Sequence record: NC_061449.1
Length of the DNA stretch: 64,000 nucleotides
Strand: one strand, 5' to 3'
This document shows positions 37,270 through 59,450 of this stretch, piece by piece (the stretch's first letter is position 1; each line of letters starts with the position of its first letter). Under the pieces are notes generated by a model. It searched no databases. It had not been told where the DNA came from and saw only the letters and a list, made by a program, of their open reading frames with translations. Both the position numbers and the translations under genes were made by a program.

Positions 37270-38808
37270 ATGTCATTCGATCTTCGTCAAAACTTACTGC
37301 TTGTTCGTGACGCTGCCTTGACAGGCAAGCCGCTGTTTTATTTCTACAACGCCATGGGACGTGAGATGGTTCTTACTGGCGATGTGCTGCGTGAAATCAT
37401 TGAGCGCCAGAAAGAAGGTACGCTCTGCACTAACACTTACTGGGGTTTCGCGTCTGACCCTACGCTAGAGGTTTGGTCGTTCGACGATAACAATGACCTA
37501 ATGCTTCACCATCACGTAGGCAAGTCCTGCAAAACGTTCCTGCCGTATGAGATGCTTGAGAGTGCTCACGAAGGCTTCAAGCCCATCAATGGTCTGTTCA
37601 TCGAAGACAGTCTGCGCCGCATAATCAAGATTCATCTCAAGGCAACATGCCGTGAGGAACAAAAGATCACTTGGTTTGCCGATCTACCTGAGTCCGAAAT
37701 GCGTAGCATGTTGTTATCTCTCGGTGTGGGTCCGATGCGTGTGTCGCGGGAAGACAAAGAAGGTCTGGTCAAGCTGCATGGCCGTTGGCTGGAAGACTTC
37801 GATGATAAGTACAAGTACACGCATAACGCAATCGGCTTGGACGACAACGAAAAAATTCCTGCTGACTATCGCCCTGACCGCATTCGTGACATTACGAAGC
37901 GTATGATGGCTAATGGCAAAACTCAGGATATGATGGACCAAACTCTGAATGACTTGTTGCGTCAGTGTCGTATTCGCGGCGATATCCCGCATCCGGGCCG
38001 TAACTTCAATCGCCATCAATTGACTTGCTACTACGCAACGCATTTGATCTTTGCGCACGACGCGAAAGAGAAAATGTCAGAACTGATTGATAATCCGCAA
38101 TTCGTGGTCAACTTCATTTATGGCTGGTACCCGGAATATACGTGGATTACGATCAACGAAGAAACGTTCGAGTATCAGCAGTCGCTGGTACGTGCCGCGC
38201 TGATCAGTCTGCAACGTCATGTGCAGAATGAAGTTGATGTATACAAGATCGATCATGGCATGGTTAAGTTTGCAGACAACTTCGAACCAAAAACAAACGA
38301 AAAGCCAGAAGATGATGGTGATCTTGATCTGGATAAACTGGACAGAGATGGTCTGTTAGAGCTGGTCATCCAGTATAAGCTGGCCTCAGCAAAGAAAGCC
38401 GCATCACTCGATATTTCTGAGTTACGTGAGCTTTGTGAAGACCATTTCGGGTATGATGAAGTTGAAGAGGACGAGCCAGAACAGGAGCGTGAGCCTCGTA
38501 AATTCCCAGCCGTCAGCGATGACCGTAATATCAGCTACGAAGCGATTCGTAAGGTTCTGATGAAAGCTAAAGTTCCTCGCGCTACCTACGCAGGCGACCT
38601 GTACTCAAACAACCGAGCAACTGTAAGCAAAGTACGTAAGAGCATAATCAGTGCTCTGACAAATGCAGTTGAAGAGGGTATGCTGAATAAACTGCCTCAA
38701 ATCTCATTAGAGGCTATTGCATACGCTCTGACAAAAATGAAAGACGGTGATCGCTATCCGCGTGACGCTGAGTACCTGAAAGAACTAATTAAACACGCAC
38801 TGCGTTAA
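37270..38808 (+). CDS. Hypothetical protein carrying the shared ~45-aa helical module
   Basis: AGGAG RBS; LDLDKLDRDGLLELVIQYKLASAKKAASLDISELRELCEDHFG at 38323-38454. Confidence 0.8.
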   Translation: MSFDLRQNLLLVRDAALTGKPLFYFYNAMGREMVLTGDVLREIIERQKEGTLCTNTYWGFASDPTLEVWSFDDNNDLMLHHHVGKSCKTFLPYEMLESAHEGFKPINGLFIEDSLRRIIKIHLKATCREEQKITWFADLPESEMRSMLLSLGVGPMRVSREDKEGLVKLHGRWLEDFDDKYKYTHNAIGLDDNEKIPADYRPDRIRDITKRMMANGKTQDMMDQTLNDLLRQCRIRGDIPHPGRNFNRHQLTCYYATHLIFAHDAKEKMSELIDNPQFVVNFIYGWYPEYTWITINEETFEYQQSLVRAALISLQRHVQNEVDVYKIDHGMVKFADNFEPKTNEKPEDDGDLDLDKLDRDGLLELVIQYKLASAKKAASLDISELRELCEDHFGYDEVEEDEPEQEREPRKFPAVSDDRNISYEAIRKVLMKAKVPRATYAGDLYSNNRATVSKVRKSIISALTNAVEEGMLNKLPQISLEAIAYALTKMKDGDRYPRDAEYLKELIKHALR

Positions 38809-42549: not shown

Positions 42550-44166
42550 ATGGCACGTATCGAAACTAACACTAACCTGGTTGGCAAAACTATCGTCCTG
42601 CTGAACGGCACCAAAACTAAAATCGAAGATGCAATCGCATCCGGCTACAAAGTGAAAGGCCAGACGAAACGTATCGCTACCCGTTGCGTTGTGAAAGATG
42701 GTGCGCACTTCCGTGAAATCGAACGTATGAACATGAGCCAGCTGGAAGATACAGGCGAAGGTTATGTTAAGCTGAAAGATGCGAAAGCGTCTGGCAAGAA
42801 AGCGACCGGCAAGAAAGACGCTGTGAAAGAGAAAGCGCCTAAGACTTCTGGTAAGAAGACTGGCGGCAAAGTCTCGAAAGAGAAAGAGCCGAAAGTTCGT
42901 CGCAAAACAAAAGTTAGTGGAGGCGAAGACGAGCTGGACTTCAATGATTTTTCAGCAACCGCTGTTGCTGGCTCTATCATCAAAGGCGGCAAGGCGAAAC
43001 CTGCTGTTGAAATCGAGGCTGTAGACGAAACGCTGACCGATACTGTAGCCAAACGTCTGGTGGCGCTGATTGAAAACAGCGAAATTGCGAAAGTGTGCGC
43101 TGACAACAAAACGCCGATCGCTAACGCGCTGTCAGTTGCTTACGGTGCTGAGTACGCCGAAGAGAACAACACAATGCAGATCACGCTGAGCCTGCAATAT
43201 GCGATGCCTGTCAAAGATACCGCTGTTGCGCCTGAGCTTGATGAAGCTGTTGCGAAACGTGCCTCCAAACTTGCTGCTAAGAAGATTGGCAAAGTGCTGG
43301 CGAAAGCAATCAAAGCTGCGTTTGATCTCGAAGATGCAAACGACCTGCTGCCCGGTACTGTACTGACCACTGACGGTGCTGAGTTCGTGTTTGTGGGTGA
43401 ATCTGCTAAACACGCCGGCAAAGCGCTGATGTATAGCGCAGACACTGACGGCTTCAAATCATTCGGCGCCGACAAGCTGTCCGACTTCGAAATCGTCGCT
43501 GAGGAAAGCGAAGAAGTCGAAGAAGAAGAGGAAGAAGAGGAAGAAGAAGTCGAAGAAGTCGAAGAAGAAGAGGAAGACGGCGAAGACGACGACAACGTAG
43601 AAGATGACGGCGAGCCACAAGACGCCGAATACGAGTTCGTTGCTGTCGAAGCTGATCAACTCGAACTGGTCAACAAGAAAGTGACCGCGAAGTATCACGC
43701 TGCACTTGCCGAACGTTTCGGCGTAGACGAAGAAGCGCTCGCCCCTGGCCTGATGTTGACTGACGGCGAAACAACCTTCGCTTATCTGGGCTGCGATAGC
43801 AAAGGCGGGCTGTTGGTAATCGACCTGTCTGACGACGCAGACGAAGAAGATAACGTTCTGGTCTATAGTAAAGCGGATATCAAAACGCTGAACGACTTTA
43901 GCCCTGTGATCGATAGCGGTGAAGCTGACGACGCCGAAGAAGACACCGAAGAAGAAAACGACACCGAAGAAGAAAACGACTTCGAAGATGAAGACGGTGA
44001 AGAAGACGAAGACGAAGAAGACTTCGAATTTGACGACGCACCGAGCGAAGACCTCGAAGATCTGTCCGAAGACGAGCTGCGTGATCGCGCTGTTGAAGCC
44101 GGTCTGACTACGCCGCGTAAAGCAGACAAAATGAATGCTGCCCAGCTGCGTAAGCTCCTGAAGTAA
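42550..44166 (+). CDS. Large acidic multidomain protein, paralogue of 44243..45655
   Basis: GAGGAG RBS; shared N-terminal domain, two LxPG..F.(F/Y)(V/L)G domains, D/E tracts, C-terminal helical module. Confidence 0.85.
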   Translation: MARIETNTNLVGKTIVLLNGTKTKIEDAIASGYKVKGQTKRIATRCVVKDGAHFREIERMNMSQLEDTGEGYVKLKDAKASGKKATGKKDAVKEKAPKTSGKKTGGKVSKEKEPKVRRKTKVSGGEDELDFNDFSATAVAGSIIKGGKAKPAVEIEAVDETLTDTVAKRLVALIENSEIAKVCADNKTPIANALSVAYGAEYAEENNTMQITLSLQYAMPVKDTAVAPELDEAVAKRASKLAAKKIGKVLAKAIKAAFDLEDANDLLPGTVLTTDGAEFVFVGESAKHAGKALMYSADTDGFKSFGADKLSDFEIVAEESEEVEEEEEEEEEEVEEVEEEEEDGEDDDNVEDDGEPQDAEYEFVAVEADQLELVNKKVTAKYHAALAERFGVDEEALAPGLMLTDGETTFAYLGCDSKGGLLVIDLSDDADEEDNVLVYSKADIKTLNDFSPVIDSGEADDAEEDTEEENDTEEENDFEDEDGEEDEDEEDFEFDDAPSEDLEDLSEDELRDRAVEAGLTTPRKADKMNAAQLRKLLK

Positions 44167-47789: not shown

Positions 47790-50700
47790 ATGTCTAATAA
47801 TAATCTGGGCGCTGCTGCATCATTTGGTTCTGAAACACAAAAGCAGATTAGCGACGAGCAACGTCGTGCTCACTCTGCTGAGAGCGGTCATCTGAACAAA
47901 TGCACCATCGTTGTTCTGACTTCTCTGAACGCTCACGGTCGCTTCTCTTACATGAGCGCTGACGAGCAACTGCACGAGAAGTCGATTGAAGGTAAGGTAA
48001 TGGATCGACTGCCTAGCCTGATCGAACGTGCAACTGGTCCTTCTACAGACCAGAACAGTGCGTATTACATTCTGCATCCAAACAATGGTGTGCCTACTCG
48101 CATCGACGAGCGCATCAAAGTTGGTGAAGGTGATGCGGTCATTGTTTCGTATACTGTAAATAAAGCGGTGTCAGAGATGCACGGTAGTTTGTCGCTCGCT
48201 CTTTTCAGCGCAGGCGAAAGCGACCTGTCAGACTTGGCAGCCGAGTTTGGGGTTCACTCTATCTCGATTGTCGAAGAAAGCAAAGCCGGTAATTACATTC
48301 AGGCACTCGCCGCTCAGGTGGAAGCTCTGCAAACTGTAAATATCACAAGCATTGATGAAACTGATGGTGCTCTCGATAAAGCGGTAATTGATTACAGCGC
48401 GTTGCCAGCTAACCCTGTTACTGTGCTGTCTGGTGCTGTGCGTACTTTCATCATGCAAACTATTGGCGGCGAGATCGTTGCTGCAATTCCAAATAACGGA
48501 GAACTGAACGTGAAACAACCTACCAACGCAACGCCTGTAAACCTGAGCGAAGACTTCGACGCAGAAGACGAAGTTGTTGATCAGCATGAAGGCGGCGACG
48601 AAGAAGAAGTTGCTACTGGCACTGACCTGTTCGGCTACAAAGCAGAAACGCTGTCTGTTGAGCAAATGACCGAAGCGCTCGAAGCGATTGGTTATGATCT
48701 GACTGCGATGAACGAAGACGGTATTCGTGAATCGTTCGACACTGAGCAGGCCATCTGGCTGGAAAAAGCTGACAGCGCCGAAGTAGACGGCGAAGACGAC
48801 GATGCCGAAGACGAAGAAGAAGACGAAGAAGAAACCGAAGACGGTGACTTCGATGCCGTTCAATTCCTCGCTTCTGTGCTGGTCGCCGAAGAACTGGATC
48901 GTGCCGGTCTGAAAGTTCTGATTCGTACTCAAGACCTTCCGGTGATGAAGAAAGACACCGTTGAAACTCTGACTGCGAAGCTGCTTGAGCTGGTCGAAGG
49001 CGCAACCGAAGAAGAGATGGTTGAACTGCTGAACACATTCGTAGGCGCTCTGCAAGAGCATGAAATCGCCTGCCCGAACATGCTGGCGGCTCTGTCTTCT
49101 GACGAAGACGAAGACGAAGACGAAGACGAAGACGAAGACGAAGACGAAGAAGATTCTGAGGAGGAAGAAGACTCCGAAGATGATGAAGACGAAGACGAAG
49201 AAGATTCTGAGGAGGAAGAAGACTCCGAAGATGATGACGGTGATGACCTGCAGGAGCAGATTGACGCCGTAACTGATCCTCTCGACTACTTCCAGTTTAC
49301 CGGCGGTGCCCTGACTGCTGAACAACGTGCTGCTGCCGTTGCTGCTATGGGTGAAGACGCATCTGCGATGACTATCGTTCAGGTAATGAAAGCGTTTACT
49401 CGCATTCAAAGCCAGACCAGCCCTATCGCTGCTGACGATGAAGCTGACCTTTCGTCTAACGTTGACGAACTGACTGCGCTGCTTGGTCAGTACGATGAAG
49501 CGACCGTTCAGCACGTAGCTGAAAGCCTGGGCATTCTCGTTGACGAATGCGAAACCGCTGACGAAATGATCGAAGCGATTGCTAACGGCGGTAACGAAGA
49601 CGACTTCGCCGCAGTTGAAGAGATCGCAACTAACTACGGTGTTGACCTGTCCGAAGTTGCTGACGGCCGTGAGCTGAACTTTGTTGACGCTCTGCTTGCC
49701 GTGCTGCCAGCGTTCCTGAACGACGACGAAGTTTCCGACGACGAAGACGAAGACGAAGACGCCGATGAAGCAGGCGACGATGAAGTTGAAAGCGAAGACG
49801 AAGATGAAGTAGAAGCTGAGGGCGATGCCCCTGCTGAAAACGATCATCTGAAATTCGTTAAGTCTGTTGATACCACAAATCGCGTTGGCCCTATGCTGAC
49901 TGTCGATATGGACCAGACTCTGATCATCAACTTCACGCTGACTGACGGTGATACTTACTCGCCGATTGAAAGCGAACTGTCTGACATTAACGGCTTCAAC
50001 TACCGCTATCCGTTCAATCTGGGTAAAGCTGGTAAAGCGCCGGGCGCGATGCACCTGCCAGCGCAGTCTCTGCTGGACATCATCGAACGTACCAGCACTA
50101 CTCGCTTCATGGCTGACCCATCAACGTTCGATGTTGCTGCGTGGTCTGAGAGTCTCGAAGCGACTCTGGAAGATGAAATCGCATCATCTCTGTATGCTGG
50201 TCGCATCGAAGATGGTATGGACCCGAACGAAGCTGGTCTTGTCGTCGGTGAGTTCATCGACGAAGAAGAAATCGCACAAGCCACTGAGCTGGGATACATC
50301 GACGAAGATCAGTTTGCAGAACTGCAGGGCGACCATCTGCCGATTGCAAGCCTGTACAGTGCTAAGTCTCGCGTCCGTCCTGTGCAGGTTGATACTGCCC
50401 ACGTCGCGCTGCACACCACTGTGATGAACGTTGCAGTCCCTGGCTTCTGGGGTGACTCTGATGTTTCTCTGCTGGTGCAAGCTGCTGTTAACCGCGTTAT
50501 CGCTCTGGCTGGTACCGTTGAAGGTATCAAAGTGTACGCTGGCTTCACGTTCGAGTCTGCTGCACTGCTGAACAACGACCGTCTGTTTGAAGCGCTGACC
50601 GCACTGCGCACCATGGAAGGCGTACAGTCTTACTCTGCTGCTGACGCTGCGAACTTCGACGACGCAGAAGACGTGATCGAAGTAGCTGGTGCTCTCGATG

Positions 50701-50840
50701 CTCGCGACCTGCCGCTGTCTATCCTGTCTGGCGGTCTGGCTGCTGCAACGTTCGATAACGGCGGTGACCTGACTGTTCTTGTTCAGTGTTCTCCTGAGGA
50801 AGAAGAATCCGAAGAAGAAGACGAAGGCGAAGACGAATAA
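47790..50840 (+). CDS. Giant (1016 aa) hyper-acidic protein with several HeH-like modules
   Basis: GAGGAG RBS; D/E tracts; EELDRAGLKVLIRTQDLPVMKKDTVETLTAKLL. Confidence 0.85.
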   Translation: MSNNNLGAAASFGSETQKQISDEQRRAHSAESGHLNKCTIVVLTSLNAHGRFSYMSADEQLHEKSIEGKVMDRLPSLIERATGPSTDQNSAYYILHPNNGVPTRIDERIKVGEGDAVIVSYTVNKAVSEMHGSLSLALFSAGESDLSDLAAEFGVHSISIVEESKAGNYIQALAAQVEALQTVNITSIDETDGALDKAVIDYSALPANPVTVLSGAVRTFIMQTIGGEIVAAIPNNGELNVKQPTNATPVNLSEDFDAEDEVVDQHEGGDEEEVATGTDLFGYKAETLSVEQMTEALEAIGYDLTAMNEDGIRESFDTEQAIWLEKADSAEVDGEDDDAEDEEEDEEETEDGDFDAVQFLASVLVAEELDRAGLKVLIRTQDLPVMKKDTVETLTAKLLELVEGATEEEMVELLNTFVGALQEHEIACPNMLAALSSDEDEDEDEDEDEDEDEEDSEEEEDSEDDEDEDEEDSEEEEDSEDDDGDDLQEQIDAVTDPLDYFQFTGGALTAEQRAAAVAAMGEDASAMTIVQVMKAFTRIQSQTSPIAADDEADLSSNVDELTALLGQYDEATVQHVAESLGILVDECETADEMIEAIANGGNEDDFAAVEEIATNYGVDLSEVADGRELNFVDALLAVLPAFLNDDEVSDDEDEDEDADEAGDDEVESEDEDEVEAEGDAPAENDHLKFVKSVDTTNRVGPMLTVDMDQTLIINFTLTDGDTYSPIESELSDINGFNYRYPFNLGKAGKAPGAMHLPAQSLLDIIERTSTTRFMADPSTFDVAAWSESLEATLEDEIASSLYAGRIEDGMDPNEAGLVVGEFIDEEEIAQATELGYIDEDQFAELQGDHLPIASLYSAKSRVRPVQVDTAHVALHTTVMNVAVPGFWGDSDVSLLVQAAVNRVIALAGTVEGIKVYAGFTFESAALLNNDRLFEALTALRTMEGVQSYSAADAANFDDAEDVIEVAGALDARDLPLSILSGGLAAATFDNGGDLTVLVQCSPEEEESEEEDEGEDE
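49101..49237 (+). repeat. (GACGAA)8 microsatellite plus 51-bp-period tandem duplication in CDS
   Basis: GACGAA x8 at 49101-49148; 50 identical nt at 49137-49186 and 49188-49237. Confidence 0.9.
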
Positions 50841-50853
50841 TAAAGTCTGAACG

Positions 50854-50881
50854 AGCGGCTCGAAAGGGCCGCTTACTTTTC
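50854..50881 (+). terminator. Terminator-like hairpin with GAAA loop
   Basis: AGCGGCTC-GAAA-GGGCCGCT-TACTTTT. Confidence 0.7.
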
Positions 50882-50897
50882 TCGGGGATCTGTAAAC

Positions 50898-51725
50898 ATG
50901 ACACAAGAAGTAGACCATGAAGCTAACATCATTCAGATGCTTAGTAGCCGTGACGATAAAATCCGCGAACTGACCAACGAGCTTGAAGAAGCTGTTGGTG
51001 ATAAGAAAGATGTGGAGGACGTCTTAGATGACACAGTGCGCGGCAATACTGTGCTGCGTGTCGCACTCAGACGTAAAGTACGCCAACACGCCGTTGAAAT
51101 CTCACTGCGCGATGAACGCATTCGTGAAATCACTGGATTCTGCAACGAGCAGACCGAAGAAGTTCGCACACTGAAAGCTGAACTCGAATCTGTAAAGAGT
51201 AAACACGAAGCGGCAAACCCGCTACCGTTTGCTCTGCATATGATAATGTGTGCTGGCATCAACCACTACCACACAGTCATCCAGCAACTCGCTCACGGTA
51301 CTGTAAACCGTGAAACGAACAAAGTATCTCGCGCACTGGCCGAGCAAAACAAAACAGACACAGTGGTCAAACAGCCTTCGCTGTATCGCTCTGTCGCAAT
51401 GTATTGTTCTGCTGTTAGTACCGATGCGCCGACGGCCGATGTGCTTCGTGGTAAGATTAAAGATCACATCGAAGCGCATGTCGACCTGTTCAAGAAAGAC
51501 CAGCAGTACGAAATGTCTCGCGCTATGCTGCATCTCGTGTGGGAAGCCGAAGCGAAAGCTGCTCACATGGGGTTTGGTGCACGTAACATCTGTCGTTCAT
51601 TCGACTGGCTGCCAATCGGCGTTGCTGGTGATACCGACGTGTTAGATGATGAAGACGACTACGAAGAATTGTTCTGCGAGTCGCTTCTCACTATCTGTCT
51701 GCAACTGATTAACGATAGCTTTTAA
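50898..51725 (+). CDS. Coiled-coil hypothetical protein
   Basis: Heptad-rich N-terminal half. Confidence 0.75.
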   Translation: MTQEVDHEANIIQMLSSRDDKIRELTNELEEAVGDKKDVEDVLDDTVRGNTVLRVALRRKVRQHAVEISLRDERIREITGFCNEQTEEVRTLKAELESVKSKHEAANPLPFALHMIMCAGINHYHTVIQQLAHGTVNRETNKVSRALAEQNKTDTVVKQPSLYRSVAMYCSAVSTDAPTADVLRGKIKDHIEAHVDLFKKDQQYEMSRAMLHLVWEAEAKAAHMGFGARNICRSFDWLPIGVAGDTDVLDDEDDYEELFCESLLTICLQLINDSF

Positions 51726-51727
51726 TA

Positions 51728-51763
51728 ATCTGTAAAAGTTACCTGCAATCGAAACTGTAAACA
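51728..51763 (+). promoter_or_regulatory. Tandem WCTGTAAA motifs
   Basis: ATCTGTAAAAG (51728) and ACTGTAAACA (51754). Confidence 0.5.
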
Positions 51764-51820
51764 CTAATTGAAGTTCGAACCGAGCAACAAGCTCACACTT
51801 ATAAATCCCGGAGCATTACA

Positions 51821-52375
51821 ATGGCTAAAGTAACTAAAGGCACTTCACTGGCACCTACCCTGGCATCTCGCATTGCTAAAAAATCTGGTTCCATCAGCAC
51901 CTCTAAAGTGAAGCCTGCTGACCTGCCGCACGACATTCTGATTGAAACAGTTCAGGCTGTTGAGCTGATTGGTTTCATTACTGATCGTACTGAAAACAGC
52001 GTTACCATTCGTCACAAACGTGGTCACGGTTCTTCTGCTCAGATCGTTTCTACTTTCGGTCCTAACCAAATCCTGTCTGTGCTGGGCGAAGCCGGTTCTC
52101 ACGGTAGCGTAATCGCAAACATCAGCGCTCCGGTGCGTGAGTACAAAGGCTTCACCGTTAAGTTCGTTGGCAACTTCATCCACGCGACCTCTGTTGAAAC
52201 TGGCGAAGTGGTTCATATCAACACCGCGCTGCCTGGCTACAACGTTCGCCCGACTGTGAACGAAACTGCTGCTGCTAAAAAGTACGGTACTGCCGCGCCT
52301 GCGAAAGCGAAGAAAGCTGATAAAGCTGATAAAGGCGGTAAGCCAGCTAAACTGGTTAAGAAAGCAAAAAAGTAA
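51821..52375 (+). CDS. Basic protein with beta-rich core and Lys/Ala tail
   Basis: GGAG RBS; highly expressed-type codons. Confidence 0.8.
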   Translation: MAKVTKGTSLAPTLASRIAKKSGSISTSKVKPADLPHDILIETVQAVELIGFITDRTENSVTIRHKRGHGSSAQIVSTFGPNQILSVLGEAGSHGSVIANISAPVREYKGFTVKFVGNFIHATSVETGEVVHINTALPGYNVRPTVNETAAAKKYGTAAPAKAKKADKADKGGKPAKLVKKAKK

Positions 52376-52411
52376 TAAAGTCTGACGAAGACTTTTAACT
52401 GAACTTTCGAA

Positions 52412-52479
52412 ATCTGTAAACATTAAGTATGCAGTGAGATAAAATGTTCTCACTGCCTGTCTCTTGAAATCTGTAAATC
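52412..52479 (+). promoter_or_regulatory. Tandem WCTGTAAAY motifs
   Basis: ATCTGTAAACA (52412) and ATCTGTAAATC (52469). Confidence 0.5.
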
Positions 52480-52524
52480 TTAATTGAAGCAACATCGCTT
52501 CTACTCAAACAGGAAAAACAAATC

Positions 52525-53349
52525 ATGGCTAAAGCTGCTAAAGCAACCGTTAACACCGCATCTCTGGTTCTGGCAAAAATGCTTGGTGTTGTAGTAGAAA
52601 ACGCGACCGATAAAGAAATCGCTGCGCTGCTCGCATCTGCCGGTCTGACCGTGTCTGGTGGCAAAGTTGTTAAAGCTGACAAAGGCGGTAAAGCTGCTAA
52701 AGGCAAAAAGGCAAAAGCACCTACCGTTGCTGAAATCGTCGCTGCTGTGAAAGACGAAGAAGAACTGGACATTTCCGGCGTTGACGAAGACACTCTGCGT
52801 GAAGCAGTTGTCAAAGCCAAGCTGGCTAATAAAAAGAAAGCAGGTGCGCTGGACGAAGACGAACTGCGCGAACTGCTGAACGACAACCTGGGTGGCGAGT
52901 CCGATGAGGACGAAGACGAAGAAGAAGAAGAAGAGGACGACGAAGACGAGGACGAAGAGTCCGACGACGAAGACGAAGACGGCGACGACGACGAAGACGA
53001 AGACGACGACTCTGATGATGAAGAAGAGGACGACGAAGACGACGAAGACGGCGACGACGACGAAGACGACGAAGACGGCGACGACGAAGATGAAGATGAA
53101 GACGACGAAGATGAAGACGAGGATGAAGATGAAGATCTCGACCTCGATTCACTCGACGAAGACGAACTTCGCGCCCTGGTAATCGAACACAAGCTGGCCG
53201 CCGCCAAGAAAGCGAAAAAGATGGACGAAGATGAACTGCGCGAACTCTGCGAAGAACACTTCGGCGGCGAAGACGACGAAGACGACGAAGACGAAGATGA
53301 AGACGACGAAGACTTCGACGACGAAGACGAAGACGAAGACGACGAGTAA
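52525..53349 (+). CDS. Hyper-acidic protein with two copies of the shared helical module
   Basis: AGGA RBS; modules at 52765-52896 and 53137-53268 flanking a near-pure D/E tract. Confidence 0.85.
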   Translation: MAKAAKATVNTASLVLAKMLGVVVENATDKEIAALLASAGLTVSGGKVVKADKGGKAAKGKKAKAPTVAEIVAAVKDEEELDISGVDEDTLREAVVKAKLANKKKAGALDEDELRELLNDNLGGESDEDEDEEEEEEDDEDEDEESDDEDEDGDDDEDEDDDSDDEEEDDEDDEDGDDDEDDEDGDDEDEDEDDEDEDEDEDEDLDLDSLDEDELRALVIEHKLAAAKKAKKMDEDELRELCEEHFGGEDDEDDEDEDEDDEDFDDEDEDEDDE

Positions 53350-53366
53350 TATCTTCTGACCGGCGC

Positions 53367-53398
53367 GCCCCTCTAGTTCTGACGAATGAGCGAGGGGC
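53367..53398 (+). terminator. Hairpin after the acidic gene
   Basis: GCCCCTC...GAGGGGC. Confidence 0.45.
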
Positions 53399-53400
53399 AA

Positions 53401-53479
53401 ATATTCGAGAAAACTTTTCGAATATTTTTTGTAAAAAGTTTCAAAATTTCTTGCAGACGTATGTTGAATATAATAATGT
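53401..53479 (+). promoter_or_regulatory. Canonical sigma70-type promoter with upstream palindrome
   Basis: TTGCAG (53451)-17 nt-TAATGT (53474); ATATTCGA-GAAAACTTT-TCGAATAT at 53401-53425. Confidence 0.5.
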
Positions 53480-53566
53480 ACGTCTACAGGAAATCAAACC
53501 CTGAACAAATTTATCTTTTCATCCAGCGGTGAAAACGCCGCATCAAATATAAAGTAAGGATATCAC

Positions 53567-54091
53567 ATGAGCAAGAAAATCATCAGCGGCCTGAACAAAG
53601 AAATCAAAGCCCTGGACAAATCTGAAAAAGCGCTGGTTAAAACTGCTGCCGGTCTGACCAAAGAAGCCGAAGCGATTGCTGCACGCCGCGAAGGCCTGGC
53701 TGCTCAGGTTGAAGCTCTGGCTAGCGGCGGTGAAGCTGCTCCAGCTAAAGGCAAAGCTAAAGCAGAGAAAGCTGCTAAGCCTGCTAAAGCAGAGAAAAAA
53801 GCAAAAGCTGAAAAGCCTGCTAAAGCTGAAAAAGCTGGCAAGAAAGCAAAAGCTGAAAAGCCTGCTAAAGCTGAAAAAGCAGACAAAAAAGCAAAAGCTG
53901 AAAAGCCTGCTAAAGCAGACAAAAAAGCAAAGGCTGAAAAGCCAGCCAAAGCTGATAAAAAAGCTAAAGCTGAAAAAGCCGCTAAGCCTGCTAAAGCAGA
54001 CAAAGCCGCCAAGAAAGTGAAAGGCGACAAGAAAGCCAAAGCTGGCAAGCAGAAGAAAGAGTCCGAAGACTTCGACTTCGAAATGGAATAA
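53567..54091 (+). CDS. Histone H1-like (AlgP/Hc2-type) protein: coiled-coil N-terminus, KAEKPAKA repeats, acidic-aromatic tail
   Basis: AAGGA RBS; repeated KA(E/D)KPAKA units; ends ESEDFDFEME. Confidence 0.8.
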   Translation: MSKKIISGLNKEIKALDKSEKALVKTAAGLTKEAEAIAARREGLAAQVEALASGGEAAPAKGKAKAEKAAKPAKAEKKAKAEKPAKAEKAGKKAKAEKPAKAEKADKKAKAEKPAKADKKAKAEKPAKADKKAKAEKAAKPAKADKAAKKVKGDKKAKAGKQKKESEDFDFEME

Positions 54092-54124
54092 GCAAGTAAT
54101 CGCGCACTAGCGGTCACTTGATCG

Positions 54125-54157
54125 AAAGGGCAGCGCTGACGAGCGTTTGCCCTTTTG
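54125..54157 (+). terminator. Intrinsic terminator
   Basis: AAAGGGCAGCGCT-GACG-AGCGTTTGCCCTTTT. Confidence 0.75.
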
Positions 54158-54189
54158 TCATATCTACACGACTTTTTGAGGTATTCCCT

Positions 54190-54684
54190 ATGTCTGCCGA
54201 ACATCTGCTTAACGACGACCTCCCCGACGATACTCGCCCGCTCAAACCCGCTCTCGAATCTGCTAAACCTACCTACTACGACTTGATGACGCTACGCTTA
54301 GAAGCTGGTGCTCGTCTTGCTCGTGCTATCAAAACATTGCGTGATGCTAACGTTCTCCCTACATCAGGTAGTGGTGCTACACTTCTAACTACTGCTCTTG
54401 AAGTAGCGGAACGTCACTTCGCTGATATCTGCATGGGACTCGTACCTGTTCGTGAAGGTACTGATGTATGCACAATCAAGATGCGTGAAGACCTCCCTGC
54501 CTGTGTCGAAGCGTTTCGTATTGTCGTAATGGAACATGCTCAACGTGAAGCACTGGAGCGTGAGTGTCGAAACATGATCGACCACGTAGGCGGCTTTAAG
54601 ATTCTCACTCAGCCTCAAGTGCTGCATGTCGAAAACAAACACGTCTGCAATGGGGATTGCGATCATGACTCAGAAACTGTCTGA
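54190..54684 (+). CDS. Hypothetical protein (start ATG 54190)
   Basis: GAGGT RBS. Confidence 0.7.
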   Translation: MSAEHLLNDDLPDDTRPLKPALESAKPTYYDLMTLRLEAGARLARAIKTLRDANVLPTSGSGATLLTTALEVAERHFADICMGLVPVREGTDVCTIKMREDLPACVEAFRIVVMEHAQREALERECRNMIDHVGGFKILTQPQVLHVENKHVCNGDCDHDSETV

Positions 54685-55402
54685 ACAAATCAACCGCTAT
54701 TTTAATCTCATGGAAAAAATCCGTGAGCAAATGTACCGCGTCCTGCCTGTTAGTGACCGTTACTTGTGTGTCGTAAGTTTCAGCACACAACTCCAGGCAC
54801 TCCAGTGCGTACTGGTAAGCAAAGCATCTTTGATGGAAGCAAAGCTGATTGAAGGTCTGACTGGTCAGGAGCTGGTGACGTATGGCCAGTATCTGCAAAC
54901 TGCCGAAGAGTGGGTTGCTAATGGTATGCAAGATGATTATCCGTTCACTCAGGATAAAGATGTGTATGCCGAGTACCGCAGCCTGACGCGTGACGAATCC
55001 CAGCCTGTGCTTGAAATGGATGACGAAGATCTCGACATACAGGAGCTGGATAATCTGCGCACCTCAATTCTTTGTGCAGACAAAGCCACTCTGGTGCAGA
55101 TGTACGTAGATGAAAATCTCGGTACAAAAGGCAAAGCCGCTGACATGGATGCGGATCAATTGCAGGAAGCTCTGTGTGAGCACTACGGCCTTAACCCTGA
55201 TGTTCCTGTCAGACTCGTCGATGTTGTTGGCGAAATGGTTAAACGCTTCGAAAGCCTTCCTAACCATGACGCCCTCAAAGAAGTTGACCTCCTGACAAAG
55301 GAAGAACTGCTTAGTCTTGCAGGCGCGTGGGGTATTGAAAAGACTGCACACGAGCACACTATGCGCTCTCTTATCAAGGGCTATCTGCTGCGCCGTACAT
55401 AA
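54665..55402 (+). CDS. Hypothetical protein with the shared helical module and a second HeH-like unit
   Basis: ADKATLVQMYVDENLGTKGKAADMDADQLQEALCEHYG (55061-55192). Confidence 0.75.
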   Translation: MTQKLSEQINRYFNLMEKIREQMYRVLPVSDRYLCVVSFSTQLQALQCVLVSKASLMEAKLIEGLTGQELVTYGQYLQTAEEWVANGMQDDYPFTQDKDVYAEYRSLTRDESQPVLEMDDEDLDIQELDNLRTSILCADKATLVQMYVDENLGTKGKAADMDADQLQEALCEHYGLNPDVPVRLVDVVGEMVKRFESLPNHDALKEVDLLTKEELLSLAGAWGIEKTAHEHTMRSLIKGYLLRRT

Positions 55403-55412
55403 TTCGAACTCT

Positions 55413-55465
55413 GCATATTGTTGGACAGAACGAGGGTAGCGTCTAATACTAAAGTGTGATATAAT
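55413..55465 (+). promoter_or_regulatory. Early-type promoter family copy 10
   Basis: GCA-TATTGT-TGGACAGAAC ... TGTGA-TATAAT. Confidence 0.8.
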
Positions 55466-55535
55466 AGCGTAAGACAAGTAGTGTCTGAATATGCTAATAT
55501 CGAGTGGTAAACGCTACTCACAGGAGAATACCAAA

Positions 55536-57560
55536 ATGGCCAAAGCGCCTAAAGCTGCAAAAGTTAAAAAGTCTAGTGATGGAAGTCAGGAAGGCTTCGT
55601 AATCGCGGAGGGCTTAGATGGTATAAGAATTAACCCGGGTATGTACTTAGGTCAACGCGGCGCCGATATGGCTTATCGCGGAGTTAAGGAACCTGTTGAT
55701 AACGTTTACGACGAACACATTGCAGGTCGAAACAAAGTTCTGGAAGTTGTGATTGACTACGACAACGACCTGAACGTAGTAGCCGATATGGCGAAAGGCA
55801 TTCCGACCGACTTCAAGAAATTGAAAGATGGTTCGAAAGAAACGATCATGACCGCAGCGTTTAGCCGTGTTCACGCTGGTGGTAAGTTTAACGATCAAGC
55901 GTACAAGACTTCTGCCGGTACTCACGGCGTTGGTGTTGCTGCACTGAACGCCGTATCAAGTCAGTTGCGCGTGTGGTCAATGTACAAGGGCAATTGCTCT
56001 TATCAGATGTGGCAGTGCGGTGTTGCGAAGTCCGGCAAAGACCCGAAGAAAGTCAAGTCAGTCGATAAAGACGTAATGAGCCTGCTACGTGAAAAGAAAG
56101 CAAGCAAGTACGGTACGATTGTTGCGTGGACGCTTGACCAGACTGTCGTGTCTGCTGACGTTATGCGTGGCAAGAAGCTGCCGAAGAATTATCGACACGC
56201 TGCGCCTGACCCAGCTCAACTCGGTACATGGCTGCGCAATATGTCGCTGCTTAACCCGGGATTCGAAGTACGCCTGACATTGATCAAGAAAGGCAAGCGC
56301 AAAGAGTTCACTTTCCATAACAAGAAAGATCTCGCGCACGTTGTTAAGACTATGGTTGAAGAACGCGAACTTGGTTCAGTTGGCAAGCCGTTCATCTTCA
56401 AGAACGACAACATCACCGCTGCGTTGACGTGGACAGATCATCCAGACACTGACAACTTCCTCAGTTTCGTTAACACCAGCCCAACAATTGACGGCGGGTG
56501 GCATGTTGTAGGTTTCCGTGACGCACTGTTCGAAGCAATCAAACCTTTCATGAAAGAATCGAAAGGCAAAGGCAAGAAGAAGCAGAACTTCAAACAAGAA
56601 GACTTGCTTATCGGCCTGACTGGTATGTTCGACTGGCGTATGCACGGTGCTCAGTACACCTCGCAGGTTAAAGACAAGCTGGCGAGCCGTGTCGAAAAAG
56701 AAGTATACGAAATGCTGAAAGACGCTTTCGTGAAATACTTCAAGGACAATAAGAAAGTCGCAACGACGATTATCAAACGCGCCGAAGCTATGAACAAGGG
56801 ACGTGAAGAACTCAGCGCTGTCGTGAAGTCTATGGCAGACACGAAGAAGAAGCTGAAAGGTAACTCGCTTCCTGCTGACCTGATCTCTGCGCTCAAGTGT
56901 AAGCCGCATGAGCGTGAGCTTATCGTGGTTGAGGGCGACTCTGCCGGTGGTACTGCGAAACACGCACGTAACCCTGACTATCAGGAAGTTATGCTTGCTG
57001 GCGGTAAGCCGCTAAACGGTCTGAAAGCAAGTCTCGCTGACGTACTCAAGCACAAAGAAGTGCAGGGCATGTTAGTGTCTGTTGGTGCTGACCTGAAATC
57101 GTTAGACCCGAAAGCAGAGGCGCCTAAGTTGAGCACGAAGAATCTGCGTATCGGCAACCTGCTGTTCCTGATGGATGCTGACCCAGACGGCTTCCACATT
57201 GCAACGTTGTTCCTCGGCGTTATCTATCGTCTGCTGCCTGACCTGATGAAAGAGGGTCGTGTGTGGATCGTAGATGCCCCGCTGTATAACGTGATGCACA
57301 AAGGCGTTCACTACGGTGGCATGACGTTTGAAGAATGCCGAGCGAAAGCGCCGTCTGCTGTAAAAGATAAAGAAATCGTTCGTGCTAAAGGTTGGGGTGA
57401 AGTTGAACCTGACGTGCTCGAAGCGATCTCATTCAATCCGAAGACTCGTCGCTTGATTCGCGTGAACCCGTTCACTAGCGTTGAGCAAGAACGTTTCTTC
57501 CGTGGTGTGCTGGCAGAAGATGCAGTCCATCGTCGTCGTCTGCTGGGTCTGGAGGAATAA
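55536..57560 (+). CDS. Type IIA DNA topoisomerase, GyrB/ParE-like subunit
   Basis: NPGMYLG, EPVDNVYDE, KGIP, HAGGKF, GTHGVG, EGDSAGG, GKPLN, DADPDG; AGGAG RBS before ATG 55536. Confidence 0.95.
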   Translation: MAKAPKAAKVKKSSDGSQEGFVIAEGLDGIRINPGMYLGQRGADMAYRGVKEPVDNVYDEHIAGRNKVLEVVIDYDNDLNVVADMAKGIPTDFKKLKDGSKETIMTAAFSRVHAGGKFNDQAYKTSAGTHGVGVAALNAVSSQLRVWSMYKGNCSYQMWQCGVAKSGKDPKKVKSVDKDVMSLLREKKASKYGTIVAWTLDQTVVSADVMRGKKLPKNYRHAAPDPAQLGTWLRNMSLLNPGFEVRLTLIKKGKRKEFTFHNKKDLAHVVKTMVEERELGSVGKPFIFKNDNITAALTWTDHPDTDNFLSFVNTSPTIDGGWHVVGFRDALFEAIKPFMKESKGKGKKKQNFKQEDLLIGLTGMFDWRMHGAQYTSQVKDKLASRVEKEVYEMLKDAFVKYFKDNKKVATTIIKRAEAMNKGREELSAVVKSMADTKKKLKGNSLPADLISALKCKPHERELIVVEGDSAGGTAKHARNPDYQEVMLAGGKPLNGLKASLADVLKHKEVQGMLVSVGADLKSLDPKAEAPKLSTKNLRIGNLLFLMDADPDGFHIATLFLGVIYRLLPDLMKEGRVWIVDAPLYNVMHKGVHYGGMTFEECRAKAPSAVKDKEIVRAKGWGEVEPDVLEAISFNPKTRRLIRVNPFTSVEQERFFRGVLAEDAVHRRRLLGLEE

Positions 57561-57561
57561 C

Positions 57562-57801
57562 ATGTTTACGAAAGAGAACCTCTCTGACGGTACGCAAGTT
57601 CGCTTTCTCGATCTGGCTCCGTACGAACAACGTCCGATGACTGCTGCTGGGCGTGAACAACACACTACTCTAATGTGCCGTGTGCGTGAGCGCTGTAAAG
57701 ATGTTGTCGTACCAGCTATGTGTGAAGGGCAGCGTGTTCAATTGCGTATGCAGCGCACCACTCTTGATAAGATTAACGCGATTGCCAAAGGGGAACAGTA
57801 A
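57562..57801 (+). CDS. 79-aa hypothetical protein between the topoisomerase subunits
   Basis: GGAGGA RBS; TAATG coupling to the next gene. Confidence 0.65.
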   Translation: MFTKENLSDGTQVRFLDLAPYEQRPMTAAGREQHTTLMCRVRERCKDVVVPAMCEGQRVQLRMQRTTLDKINAIAKGEQ

Positions 57802-59450
57802 TGGCAGTTAAGCCGAAGAAAGTTAAAGTCGTTAAGAAAGCGACTGCGGTAGCGAAGCCTGCAAAGGTTAAGTTGAAGTCGAAAGCTGTTGCTGTCGATG
57901 ACATGCCGAAGAAGAAAAAGAAGAAAGGCGAAGTAGCGGAAACGAGTACAAGCACTTCGCTGTACCCGATGATTGGTCAAGACGAGTCGCTCATTCGTGA
58001 CGAGAACCTCGCTGATTACACACGACGCGCTCTCTTCCAGTACGGTTCATACGTTGTTGAAGACCGTGCTATCGCTGACTATCGTGACGGCCTCAAGCCT
58101 GTGCACCGTGCGTTACTCTGGTCGCTGTCTGACTTGGGGTTACGCCCAGGTGGTGCGTTCAAGAAAGCTGCACGTACTGTTGGTGATGCGTTAGGTAAGT
58201 ATCACCCACACGGTGATGCTGCTTGTTATGGTGCTATGGTGACGATTGCGAACACAGTGCCGCCTGCTGTAGCGGGTCAAGGCAACTGGGGTGACCCGGT
58301 AGCACCTGCCGCTGCGATGCGTTATACCGAAGCGAAAATGAGTAAGTTCGCGGGTAGCTTCTTGCTTGACCCTGACTATCTCGAAGTAACGCCGATGGTA
58401 GACAACTTCTCGAACGATATGAAGTTGCCACTGTATCTGCCTGCACTTCTGCCGTACATGCTGTTCAACGGTAGTGTGCCTGCACCAGCGTATGGGGTGA
58501 AGTGCGGTAACCCGTCATTTAGCTTCACGTCCGTTGCAAAAGTCGTGTGCGATATGCTCAATGGCAAAGAGTATAGCGCGAAGAAGCTCGCTGATACGCT
58601 CAAAGTCAATCATGAGTATGGCTGTCTCGACGTAAGCTCTGATGAAGACTTCCTCGCGCTTATGTCTACGGGGCGTGGCAAAGTCACATACGAACCGCAG
58701 ATGAAGATCGACGAGAAGACGAAGACGATCACGATTCAAACGTATGTGCCGGGCGGTATGTCGAACAACGCAACCATCACCAAGAAGCTGGAGAAGATTG
58801 CAGAGTGGCCTGGCGTCGTGTCTGCATCAAACGCCAGTTCGAAGAAGAACAAAGACGCAGGCCCGTGGGGCGCAGCGTTTGCGATCAAGTGTCGTGGTAG
58901 CGAAGACCAGTTATACGAACTCGCAACCAAAGTGCAGCGTGAAGTTACCTCAGCGATTAACTACTCACTGGGTGTGACTGTCCGACGTGCTGATGCCTCG
59001 AACAAGTTCATGTACCTGTCGTATGTGAACTACTTCAAAGCGTGGGTTGCGTATCGCATTAAGCTGGAAGTTGCGATGCTCAAAAACAAGATGGCCAAAG
59101 CAGAGAAAGCCTTACATCTGCAAGAGGTTTACTTGTGGGCAGTGGACAACATGGACAAGCTGCTTAAAGCTCTGCCTAAAGCGCTGGTGGCCAGTGACCC
59201 TGACGCAACTCTTGCGAAGCTGTGCAAGATTCCTGTTGACGACGCGAAGATCATTCTCGACCGTCAAGTGCGTAAGCTCGCTAAACTTGAACGTGCTGGA
59301 CTTGTCGCCAAGATTAAAGAAATCAAGGCCGAAATTGCAGAGTATAAAGCTGGTCTGAAAGAGCCTGGAAAATATGCCGCAAATGGCACTGCTGCAAAAG
59401 TTAAGGCTTATCTCAAATCACCGGATGATAAACTTCCTGTAGGTCTTTGA
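57801..59450 (+). CDS. Type IIA DNA topoisomerase, GyrA/ParC-like subunit lacking the C-terminal beta-pinwheel
   Basis: DGLKPVHR, KAARTVGDALGKYHPHGD, AAMRYTEA (catalytic Tyr); only 549 aa. Confidence 0.95.
   Translation: MAVKPKKVKVVKKATAVAKPAKVKLKSKAVAVDDMPKKKKKKGEVAETSTSTSLYPMIGQDESLIRDENLADYTRRALFQYGSYVVEDRAIADYRDGLKPVHRALLWSLSDLGLRPGGAFKKAARTVGDALGKYHPHGDAACYGAMVTIANTVPPAVAGQGNWGDPVAPAAAMRYTEAKMSKFAGSFLLDPDYLEVTPMVDNFSNDMKLPLYLPALLPYMLFNGSVPAPAYGVKCGNPSFSFTSVAKVVCDMLNGKEYSAKKLADTLKVNHEYGCLDVSSDEDFLALMSTGRGKVTYEPQMKIDEKTKTITIQTYVPGGMSNNATITKKLEKIAEWPGVVSASNASSKKNKDAGPWGAAFAIKCRGSEDQLYELATKVQREVTSAINYSLGVTVRRADASNKFMYLSYVNYFKAWVAYRIKLEVAMLKNKMAKAEKALHLQEVYLWAVDNMDKLLKALPKALVASDPDATLAKLCKIPVDDAKIILDRQVRKLAKLERAGLVAKIKEIKAEIAEYKAGLKEPGKYAANGTAAKVKAYLKSPDDKLPVGL

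Follow-up and report, generated by a model that had tools for sequence, protein, structure and literature searches.

A conserved trio of charge-extreme proteins in jumbo phages without a nuclear shell as a candidate DNA-coating system

Several well-characterized systems provide reference points for proteins that combine extreme charge with disorder or with short acidic tips. Linker histone H1 joins a winged-helix globular domain to a disordered K/A/P-rich tail and has a counterpart of opposite charge in prothymosin-alpha, a near-pure acidic protein; in bacteria, Hc1, Hc2 and AlgP consist of a short helical N-terminal part followed by K/A/P repeats. Bacterial SSB and gp2.5 of phage T7 carry acidic C-terminal tips in which the last residue is aromatic, and dnaX uses the heptamer A_AAA_AAG. 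Among phages, T4 heads contain basic internal proteins and acidic peptides, and nucleus-forming jumbo phages guard and organize their DNA with a protein shell. H1-like proteins of the Hc1 family (PF07432) have been reported in metagenomic 'moraphages' (PMC12619734).

We analyzed the final 64 kb (hereinafter the window) of the genome of the Erwinia jumbo phage pEa_SNUABM_17 (NC_061449.1), a member of the genus Alexandravirus. The original prediction for this stretch had proposed that a phage without a nuclear shell encodes, in three consecutive genes, a DNA-compacting protein together with an acidic chaperone. The first part of this proposal holds: the Alexandravirus group falls outside the nucleus-forming Chimalliviridae, and all three ORFs are present at the coordinates originally given, on the plus strand, annotated as hypothetical proteins gp318, gp319 and gp320 in NC_061449.1 (A, B and C, respectively, in what follows). 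They belong to a conserved cassette:

47790..50840, plus strand: gp316, 1016 aa, hyper-acidic (net charge -206), opening the cassette
50898..51725, plus strand: gp317, 275 aa, coiled-coil-type, second gene of the cassette
51821..52375, plus strand: gene A (gp318), basic N-terminal arm, all-beta core (residues ~37-145), K-rich tail
52525..53349, plus strand: gene B (gp319), helical modules and acidic tracts
53567..54091, plus strand: gene C (gp320), conserved helical N-terminus of ~55 aa of the coiled-coil type, K/A/P/E repeats, C-terminal E-D-F-D-F

Large acidic ORFs syntenic with gp316 are located 5' of A in Y3, JA11, Yoloswag, Yen9-02 and metagenomic contigs, and topoisomerase II genes adjoin the cassette in all relatives. 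Scans of the trio and its neighbors against Pfam, PHROGs and NCBIfam yielded only PHROGs of unknown function or noise, and literature searches retrieved no description of the trio proteins.

The trio was identified in Erwinia, Dickeya, Yersinia, Pseudomonas (PaBG), marine (NCTB) and metagenomic relatives. It is a unit, as originally proposed: gene order, architecture and net charge are kept from the Erwinia phages to PaBG and NCTB, and synteny and architecture persist in 7 sequenced phage lineages as well as in metagenomic contigs, with the identity between A proteins at just 24-50%. The net charges in pEa_SNUABM_17 (+15 for A, -106 for B and +26 for C) are nearly constant across the relatives, at +11 to +16, -89 to -106 and +26 to +31, respectively; B holds its charge within this range at lengths anywhere between 150 and 294 aa. 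One could surmise that A, B and C, none of which is assigned to a family, are unrelated, fast-drifting low-complexity neighbors with no joint function; the retention of order, architecture, charge and terminal motifs over very distant phages argues against this. The KADKGGK peptide to which the original prediction had drawn attention is indeed common to the tail of A and the linker of B. It is absent from relatives such as Y3 and hence appears to be a low-complexity coincidence; we rejected it as a functional motif. Prediction of an A+B+C complex yielded no answer (score 0.00), as expected for disordered chains.

The strong codon bias of the three genes was confirmed: in a ranking of 302 ORFs by codon adaptation, for which the major head and sheath genes provided the reference set, C, A and B are 3rd, 4th and 5th, respectively, all above the major capsid protein. 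This codon usage points to very high expression of the trio. Adaptation at this level is on a par with the most abundant virion proteins, and proteins of extreme charge, positive or negative, are typical of what a head contains, features that point to the main rival explanation, namely, that these are head-internal or scaffold-type proteins, with A and C packaged to neutralize the DNA and B forming, together with gp316, an acidic core or scaffold component. The genes for T4 internal proteins likewise lie outside the head gene cluster, and the E-D-F motif discussed below is found also in gp139, an ATPase of the head module. Other observations disagree with a location in the head. The 14 abundant virion gel bands identified for PaBG include none of the trio homologs (gp124-126), an absence that is weak evidence for B and C given their poor tryptic peptides and better evidence for A; C contains no processing-type [LIV]xE sites; and the cassette travels together with topoisomerase genes. 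On balance, we consider packaging in the head unlikely; if it is nevertheless the case, the trio would reveal which internal proteins this phage group uses.

Of the 174 residues of C, 52 are K, 49 A and 7 P, and the repeats are imperfect, with 9 to 15 residues per unit (periods of 27-45 bp). The DFDFEME tail is present at the C-terminus, as originally described, and the putative coiled coil is backed only by weak matches to coiled-coil families and by the sequence itself. The description of this protein as H1-like is apt with respect to composition, in view of the K/A/P-rich tail, and finds no support with respect to homology, be it to H1, Hc1 or other named DNA-compacting proteins. Neither the linker histone winged helix nor Hc1 (PF07432) was matched in Pfam at E <= 0.1 with the whole protein or at E <= 10 with the N-terminus. 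A sequence search of the PDB returned only the tail of ribosomal protein L23 (E 0.1), and a word-indexed search for homologs of the N-terminus produced no match. A second protein with KAPKAA repeats, gp183, is more basic than C and is encoded in the structural block; it is at least as good a DNA-condensing candidate.

Nearly half of B consists of acidic residues (133 D+E among 274 aa), with near-pure D/E at positions ~125-205 and again from 247. From a basic N-terminus, the chain passes through a small helical region and a K-rich linker into a three-helix module (~65-122); the D/E tract, 80 residues long, comes next and gives way to a second module (~205-246), with an acidic tail at the end. 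The helical modules that had been proposed to flank the D/E tract are also predicted by structural modeling (pLDDT 83-92). The length of the tract drifts, and the final 14 residues, which include an E-D-F motif, are invariant. No relationship of B to known acidic chaperones could be substantiated, with no significant match in Pfam, NCBIfam, PDB searches or Foldseek; for prothymosin, nucleoplasmin and NAP in particular, Pfam, NCBIfam, the PDB profile search and Foldseek gave only low-complexity noise.

The three-helix module, present in two copies in B, recurs in three additional proteins encoded in the window:

37270..38808, plus strand: gp302, the best-scoring copy of the module outside B
42550..44166, plus strand: gp311, K-rich stretch, acidic tracts, EDFEF motif and a C-terminal copy of the module
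54665..55402, plus strand: gp322, a single copy of the module

The similarity of this 45-aa module to SAP/HeH domains is below threshold (Ish1, E 0.032 for module 2 of B; SAP, E 0.014 for the gp311 copy), and the best Foldseek match has an E value of 4. In codon adaptation, gp311 ranks 11th. B and C share related E-D-F motifs: the [DE]F[DE]F tip of C is kept in 7 of 7 lineages, and EDF[DE]F is found in C, gp311 and gp212. Together, the family-specific module and motif tie together at least six otherwise unannotated proteins. This pattern fits a scaffold of a membrane-less compartment, in which B and gp316 would form a coacervate with C and A, and thus a factory for replication or assembly. The block-charged, multivalent build of these proteins, the distribution of the module and of EDF[DE]F, the very high inferred expression, the conservation of net charge rather than sequence, and the position of the phage outside Chimalliviridae are all compatible with such a scaffold. 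This scenario is, however, purely inferential, literature searches having found no imaging or biophysical work on this phage group, and the same features are accommodated by simple DNA coating; we regard it as rather improbable.

Protein A (184 aa, with 28 K+R and 13 D+E) has a core that, in the AlphaFold2 model (pLDDT 85.4), is a confidently predicted, novel all-beta fold. At 50% identity, the family breaks down into 31 clusters in a set of 1.8 billion proteins. Neither Foldseek comparison of the model with the PDB nor a PDB profile search detected a solved relative, and an OB-fold is not apparent, the best Foldseek match in the PDB having an E value of 0.03 and a TM-score <0.2. When the models of A and B were compared with BFVD, only the family itself was retrieved, plus a weak match in Achromobacter phage Motura.

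The 3' end of A includes a putative recoding signal:

52366..52398, plus strand: slippery heptamer A_AAA_AAG (pattern X_XXY_YYZ), then the 0-frame stop and a short extension whose -1 frame encodes an acidic tip with Phe as the last residue

In 9 lineages, A_AAA_AAG comprises the final two sense codons of A, with the stop codon directly after. Genome-wide, an adenine precedes only 1 of the 76 in-frame AAA-AAG dicodons, so that the sole in-frame heptamer of this kind is the one at the end of gene A. The -1 extension in the 9 lineages spans 7-10 codons, encoding an acidic run and then a terminal Phe, and differs between lineages by whole codons and synonymous changes. JA11, pEa_SNUABM_7 and metagenomic relatives encode the same acidic, Phe-ended tip in frame. 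The combination of this tip in the -1 frame with its in-frame equivalents makes a programmed -1 frameshift at the end of A likely; the stop codon next to the heptamer may act as a ribosome pause. Transcriptional slippage was considered as the origin of the tip and dropped because the run of six A is short for it. Dropped, too, was a downstream hairpin that would stimulate frameshifting, as none is conserved: no stimulatory RNA structure was detected, and RNAalifold predicts no conserved pairs in 7 phages. The relative L025 and phage NCTB have neither the heptamer nor the tip. The latter two observations would also fit if the out-of-frame tip were a decaying remnant in a gene without any function shared with B and C, the possibility raised above. 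Decay is at odds with the maintenance of the extension frame in 9 lineages through whole-codon indels and synonymous changes and with the avoidance of the heptamer elsewhere in the genome, so that the absence of a joint function is hardly credible. The likely frameshift would be a new case of programmed frameshifting, one that toggles a short docking tip. The frameshift, the E-D-F motifs, the recurrence of the B module and gp183 had all been missed in the original prediction.

The trio is interspersed with candidate regulatory elements:

51728..51773, plus strand: promoter-like motif A[AT]CTGTAAA in two copies, the second followed by TAATTGAAG; conserved 5' of A in relatives
52412..52485, plus strand: A-B intergenic signals, namely, a copy of the motif, a conserved hairpin (52431-52456) and a second copy of the motif with TAATTGAAG
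53360..53430, plus strand: two terminator-like hairpins 3' of B, with a T run behind the second one, as read from the sequence; equivalents in relatives
53449..53491, plus strand: conserved palindrome/hairpin 5' of C, unique in the genome
54126..54158, plus strand: terminator-like GC hairpin and T run after C, as read from the sequence; conserved in Y3

Given the motifs before A and B, the hairpins after B and C, and the conserved palindrome that C has 5' of it, the separate promotion of the three genes that was originally postulated appears plausible. A sigma-70 promoter before C was rejected: the hexamers are wrongly spaced for one, and what occupies the region is the conserved palindrome, in which 4 of the 18 pairs show compensatory changes in 5 phages. 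The TAATTGAAG extension is found solely before A and B. The promoter-like motif itself also precedes the genes for SSB, a DNA methyltransferase and a ParB-like protein and a DNA polymerase piece, and is absent before the major head and sheath genes; conversely, the TAATTTCA motif that precedes structural genes is missing before A and B, which is another argument against a location in the head. The sharing of a motif with non-structural genes is compatible also with host takeover or counter-defense, whereby C would condense and silence the host nucleoid and B, as a decoy, would draw off host proteins that bind DNA, for instance nucleoid proteins or nucleases. The 80-residue D/E run of B has a DNA-like charge density, and chlamydial Hc1 in E. 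coli has been cited as condensing DNA and lowering synthesis (PMC12619734). Neither Pfam nor NCBIfam, however, matched B to DNA-mimic families, including the anti-restriction proteins Ocr and ArdA; decoys are usually folded mimics that would not be needed in the amounts of a capsid protein; and the strict co-conservation of three genes and their charge balance would remain unexplained. Host takeover thus seems quite unlikely.

The reading that we favor, with a probability of about one in three, is that the trio coats DNA within the cell by means of charge, with a polyanion as the buffer. Under this hypothesis, A, B and C, which are abundantly made, charge-extreme and largely disordered, would act jointly on DNA within the infected cell. 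C would oligomerize via its N-terminal coiled coil, and its K/A/P repeat region (net charge ~+28) would bind DNA without sequence preference, coating or bridging it; A would contribute a folded beta core with basic arms on both sides. B, a polyanion of ~-100 with two small helical docking modules, would compete with DNA for the polycations and keep them soluble and exchangeable. The short acidic-aromatic E-D-F motifs that each of the three proteins has at or close to its C-terminus might fold back on the basic tracts or, alternatively, serve as docking sites for one shared partner. For A, the tip would in most lineages depend on a -1 slip at the terminal A_AAA_AAG, so that two isoforms would be made. 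The DNA binding, the interplay of B with A and C, and the time and place of action are what we infer only; the features counted in favor are conservation, charge constancy, codon rank, the motifs, topoisomerase adjacency, the lack of the PaBG homologs in the identified virion bands and the frameshift signature.

Several observations count against DNA coating. None of the trio proteins shows homology to any DNA-binding or chaperone family. C contains approximately one acidic residue per two lysines, and the charge density of the H1 tail is higher. The negative charge of B far exceeds the combined positive charge of A and C. The other genes with such high codon adaptation mostly encode virion proteins, the structural block includes the very basic repeat protein gp183, and the timing of expression is deduced from motifs only. 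A broader version of the hypothesis, to which we assign a low probability, is that this lineage of jumbo phages without a shell organizes its replicating genome by a charge-coded 'chromatin' or coacervate of its own, composed of C, the two isoforms of A, and the polyanions B and gp316. If correct, such chromatin, tied together by the three-helix module and E-D-F, would be a functional counterpart of the phage nucleus that has neither membrane nor shell. The cassette is a testable candidate for DNA organization in the non-nucleus jumbo lineages, whose quarter-megabase genomes lie in the cytoplasm.

Comparison with the known systems reveals partial parallels in each case. The trio resembles the T4 internal proteins and acidic head peptides in being small, abundant, charge-extreme and encoded outside the head cluster, and differs from them in that C lacks processing-type sites, the PaBG homologs are not among the virion bands, and the promoter-like motif is of a class other than that of the structural genes. 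The beta core, disordered linker, acidic tip and final Phe of A (in the -1 product and the in-frame relatives) are reminiscent of SSB and gp2.5; unlike in SSB, the core has no significant OB-fold match and the linker is lysine-rich, and SSB is annotated in this phage as a protein of its own, gp242. As in enterobacterial dnaX, an in-frame A_AAA_AAG, here at the end of A, would give two isoforms with different C-termini, whereas, unlike in dnaX, the heptamer abuts the 0-frame stop, the predicted shift adds 7-10 residues instead of truncating the protein, and no conserved hairpin follows. C shares with Hc1/Hc2 and AlgP the short helical N-terminal part, the K/A/P repeats and the suggested non-specific compaction of DNA, and is set apart by a conserved acidic-aromatic tip and by its constant pairing with A and B. 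In contrast to H1, C is rich in acidic residues and has a coiled-coil-type N-terminus in place of the winged-helix globular domain, and, in contrast to prothymosin-alpha, with which no homology was found, B includes helical modules that are folded, along with basic blocks. Nevertheless, the trio resembles the pair formed by the H1 tail and prothymosin-alpha in that a disordered K/A/P-rich polycation (C) and a near-pure acidic protein (B) are brought together, here as products of neighboring genes, and in that charge, not sequence, is conserved.

In megablast, positions 50000-58000 are 100% identical to the record of Erwinia phage pEa_SNUABM_17 (NC_061449.1, 263,916 bp), of which the window forms the final 64 kb. 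The ORF check found the three predicted genes at the coordinates given for them; RefSeq labels gp318, gp319 and gp320 (hereafter A, B and C, or the trio) all as 'hypothetical protein'. In relatives, they usually belong to a cassette that starts with a gp316-type gene:

47790-50840: gp316, 1016 aa, net charge -206, long D/E runs; the usual first cassette gene in relatives
51821-52375, plus strand: gp318 (A), 184 aa, net charge +15
52525-53349, plus strand: gp319 (B), 274 aa, 133 of them D or E, net charge -106
53567-54091, plus strand: gp320 (C), 174 aa, of which 52 are K and 49 are A; net charge +26, C-terminal end DFDFEME

The best-supported reading is that the trio constitutes a charge-driven set of proteins that would handle DNA in the infected cell. 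The phage belongs to the genus Alexandravirus, which is not assigned to a family and is not one of the genera of the nucleus-forming Chimalliviridae; its group comprises the Lu11/PaBG/Y3/AD1 'hairy' jumbo myoviruses (PMC7412058, PMC6143709).

Searches of Pfam, NCBIfam and PHROGs yielded no function for any of the three proteins. The original prediction had presented C as H1-like and B as an acidic chaperone; no H1, Hc1 or other profile matched C, and B showed neither a family function in these databases nor a structural match, so that 'H1-like' and 'chaperone-like' describe composition, not membership. What stands of that proposal is a conserved functional unit that combines polycation and polyanion. 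The AlphaFold2 model of A is all-beta and confident (pLDDT 85.4, core above 90); in Foldseek searches, it had no significant match in the PDB (best E 0.03, TM <0.2) and matched only members of its own family in BFVD. For B, the prediction shows three-helix modules at residues 65-122 and 205-246, both with high confidence, and disorder in the rest of the chain. Prediction of the A+B+C complex returned 'no answer', which counts neither way.

By tblastn, 60 phage records contain a match to A and 57 a match to the N-terminus of C. The trio was extracted for comparison from Y3, Dickeya phage JA11, Yoloswag, Yersinia phage fHe-Yen9-02, marine phage NCTB and Pseudomonas phage PaBG, and in every one of these the gene order is A-B-C, usually with genes for a hyper-acidic protein of about 1000 aa and a coiled-coil protein 5' of A, and with topoisomerase II genes closely 3' of the trio. 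The architecture is retained even where identity in A is 24-30%: a basic arm, beta core and K-rich tail in A; a basic start, helical region, K-rich linker and 2-4 helical modules, each followed by poly-D/E, in B; and, in C, an N-terminal helical part of about 55 aa that is followed by K/A/P repeats and, at the C-terminus, by a [DE]F[DE]F motif. Net charge is nearly constant across relatives (+11 to +16 for A, +26 to +31 for C and -89 to -106 for B), despite a range of 150 to 294 aa in the length of B. Distant homologs of A on metagenomic contigs have the same neighbor genes. An exhaustive profile-free search of 1.8 billion proteins recovered A in no more than 31 clusters at 50% identity; its family is narrow, yet diverse. 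In JA11, the last codons of gene B and a terminator-like hairpin are duplicated in tandem in the B-C intergenic region (positions 7575-7880 of the JA11 piece L004).

Many relatives of A end, in frame, in a short acidic run with a terminal Phe or Leu. The A protein of pEa_SNUABM_17 has no in-frame acidic tip; the 3' end of its gene contains the following element:

52366-52398: slippery heptamer A_AAA_AAG, stop codon and -1-frame tip

Here, the heptamer is made up of the last two sense codons and the base that precedes them, TAA follows directly, and the -1 frame beyond it reads V-I-K-S-D-E-D-F-stop. The heptamer, the stop and an equivalent -1 extension are also present in AD1, Alexandra, pEa_SNUABM_5, Y3, Yoloswag, fHe-Yen9-02 and two metagenomic contigs; with pEa_SNUABM_17 counted, the -1-frame acidic tip ending in Phe is kept in nine lineages, and the extensions differ by whole codons only, with partly synonymous changes. 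The tip is in frame in JA11 and pEa_SNUABM_7, and NCTB and one contig have neither heptamer nor tip at the end of A. Among the 76 in-frame AAA-AAG dicodons in the 322 ORFs of the genome, only that of gene A is preceded by A; the whole genome contains no other in-frame A_AAA_AAG heptamer. No conserved RNA structure was found 3' of the heptamer, and the adjoining stop codon may provide the pause. This pattern points to a likely dnaX-type programmed -1 frameshift that would yield short and tipped isoforms, probably a new case of programmed frameshifting.

B ends in 14 residues that include E-D-F and are invariant in 11 homologs, down to 65% identity; the length of the D/E tract drifts in the same proteins. 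An acidic-acidic-aromatic-acidic-(aromatic or acidic)-acidic motif occurs in only 5 of 324 phage proteins, namely B, C, gp311, gp212 and gp139. An HMM of the 45-residue module of B, built from 17 copies, matched three otherwise unannotated proteins:

37270-38808: gp302 (domain E 3e-16)
42550-44166: gp311, C-terminus (1e-7)
54665-55402: gp322 (5e-5)

Two sub-threshold Pfam matches, Ish1 for B (E 0.032) and SAP for the gp311 copy (E 0.014), might point to a module of the helix-extension-helix type. Besides its copy of the module, gp311 contains a stretch rich in K, acidic tracts and an EDFEF motif. Outside the window, gp140 (L010:7551-8684, minus strand), the neighbor of the head protease, combines a linker rich in proline and lysine with a DFDF motif and, close to the C-terminus, an HExxH-type motif. 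The peptide KADKGGK is present in A and B alike; it is missing from their homologs, and we take it to be a low-complexity coincidence. The multivalent arrangement of modules and motifs would also fit a hypothetical coacervate-type replication compartment, a more novel version of the interpretation.

Relative to a reference set of major head and sheath genes, C, A and B rank 3rd, 4th and 5th in codon adaptation among 302 ORFs, all above the major capsid gene, which confirms their strong codon bias and indicates expression at a very high level. Public wastewater metatranscriptome runs contain 38-43% of the words sampled from positions 51700-54200. Codon adaptation at the level of virion proteins speaks for the main rival explanation, that the trio proteins are internal to the head; against this, C has no processing-type sites, the PaBG homologs are missing from 14 identified virion bands (weak evidence), and the promoter-like motif of A and B is of another class. 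This motif and a hairpin are located in the window as follows:

A[AT]CTGTAAA starts: 726, 6134, 6903, 12518, 25299, 46250, 48332, 50888, 51188, 51728, 51753, 52412, 52469, 59454
53449-53491: palindrome/hairpin 5' of C, present nowhere else in the genome; conserved in five phages

The genome carries A[AT]CTGTAAA 34 times, in each case on the strand that encodes the local gene block and typically 40-70 nt 5' of a start codon, for example those of SSB, a methyltransferase, a ParB-like gene and a DNA polymerase piece; all relatives, NCTB and PaBG among them, retain it 5' of A and B. Several genes of the structural block have another motif, TAATTTCA, ahead of them, as an exact octamer 5' of gp133, gp139 and gp156 and as a one-base variant 5' of gp179; none of this type is evident 5' of the major head or sheath genes. 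These motifs make it probable that A and B share their regulation with non-structural genes. TAATTGAAG has just two genome copies, each directly after the A[AT]CTGTAAA copy closest to A or B. The palindrome, shared with Y3, JA11, Yoloswag and fHe-Yen9-02 with few compensatory changes, may act as an operator or form a 5' RNA structure. Because A, B and C each have upstream signals of their own, the suggestion that they are separately promoted is plausible.

A second H1-like candidate, missed in the original prediction, is encoded in the structural gene block outside the window:

158575-159243 of the record (L011:8575-9243), minus strand: gp183, 222 aa

This extremely basic protein contains KAPKAA repeats, is even more basic than the trio proteins and ranks 2nd in codon adaptation. 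DNA condensation in the head may in truth be its task, and it is to be weighed together with the trio.

Under the DNA-handling reading, C would be a polycation anchored via its coiled coil, A a second basic DNA-arm protein with a folded core, and B a polyanionic competitor or buffer that would interact with these partners, the E-D-F tips acting as fold-back or docking elements. Possibly, C and B function instead in host takeover or as a decoy. The trio would represent a variant of the charge-based pairing of a nucleoid protein with a polyanion.
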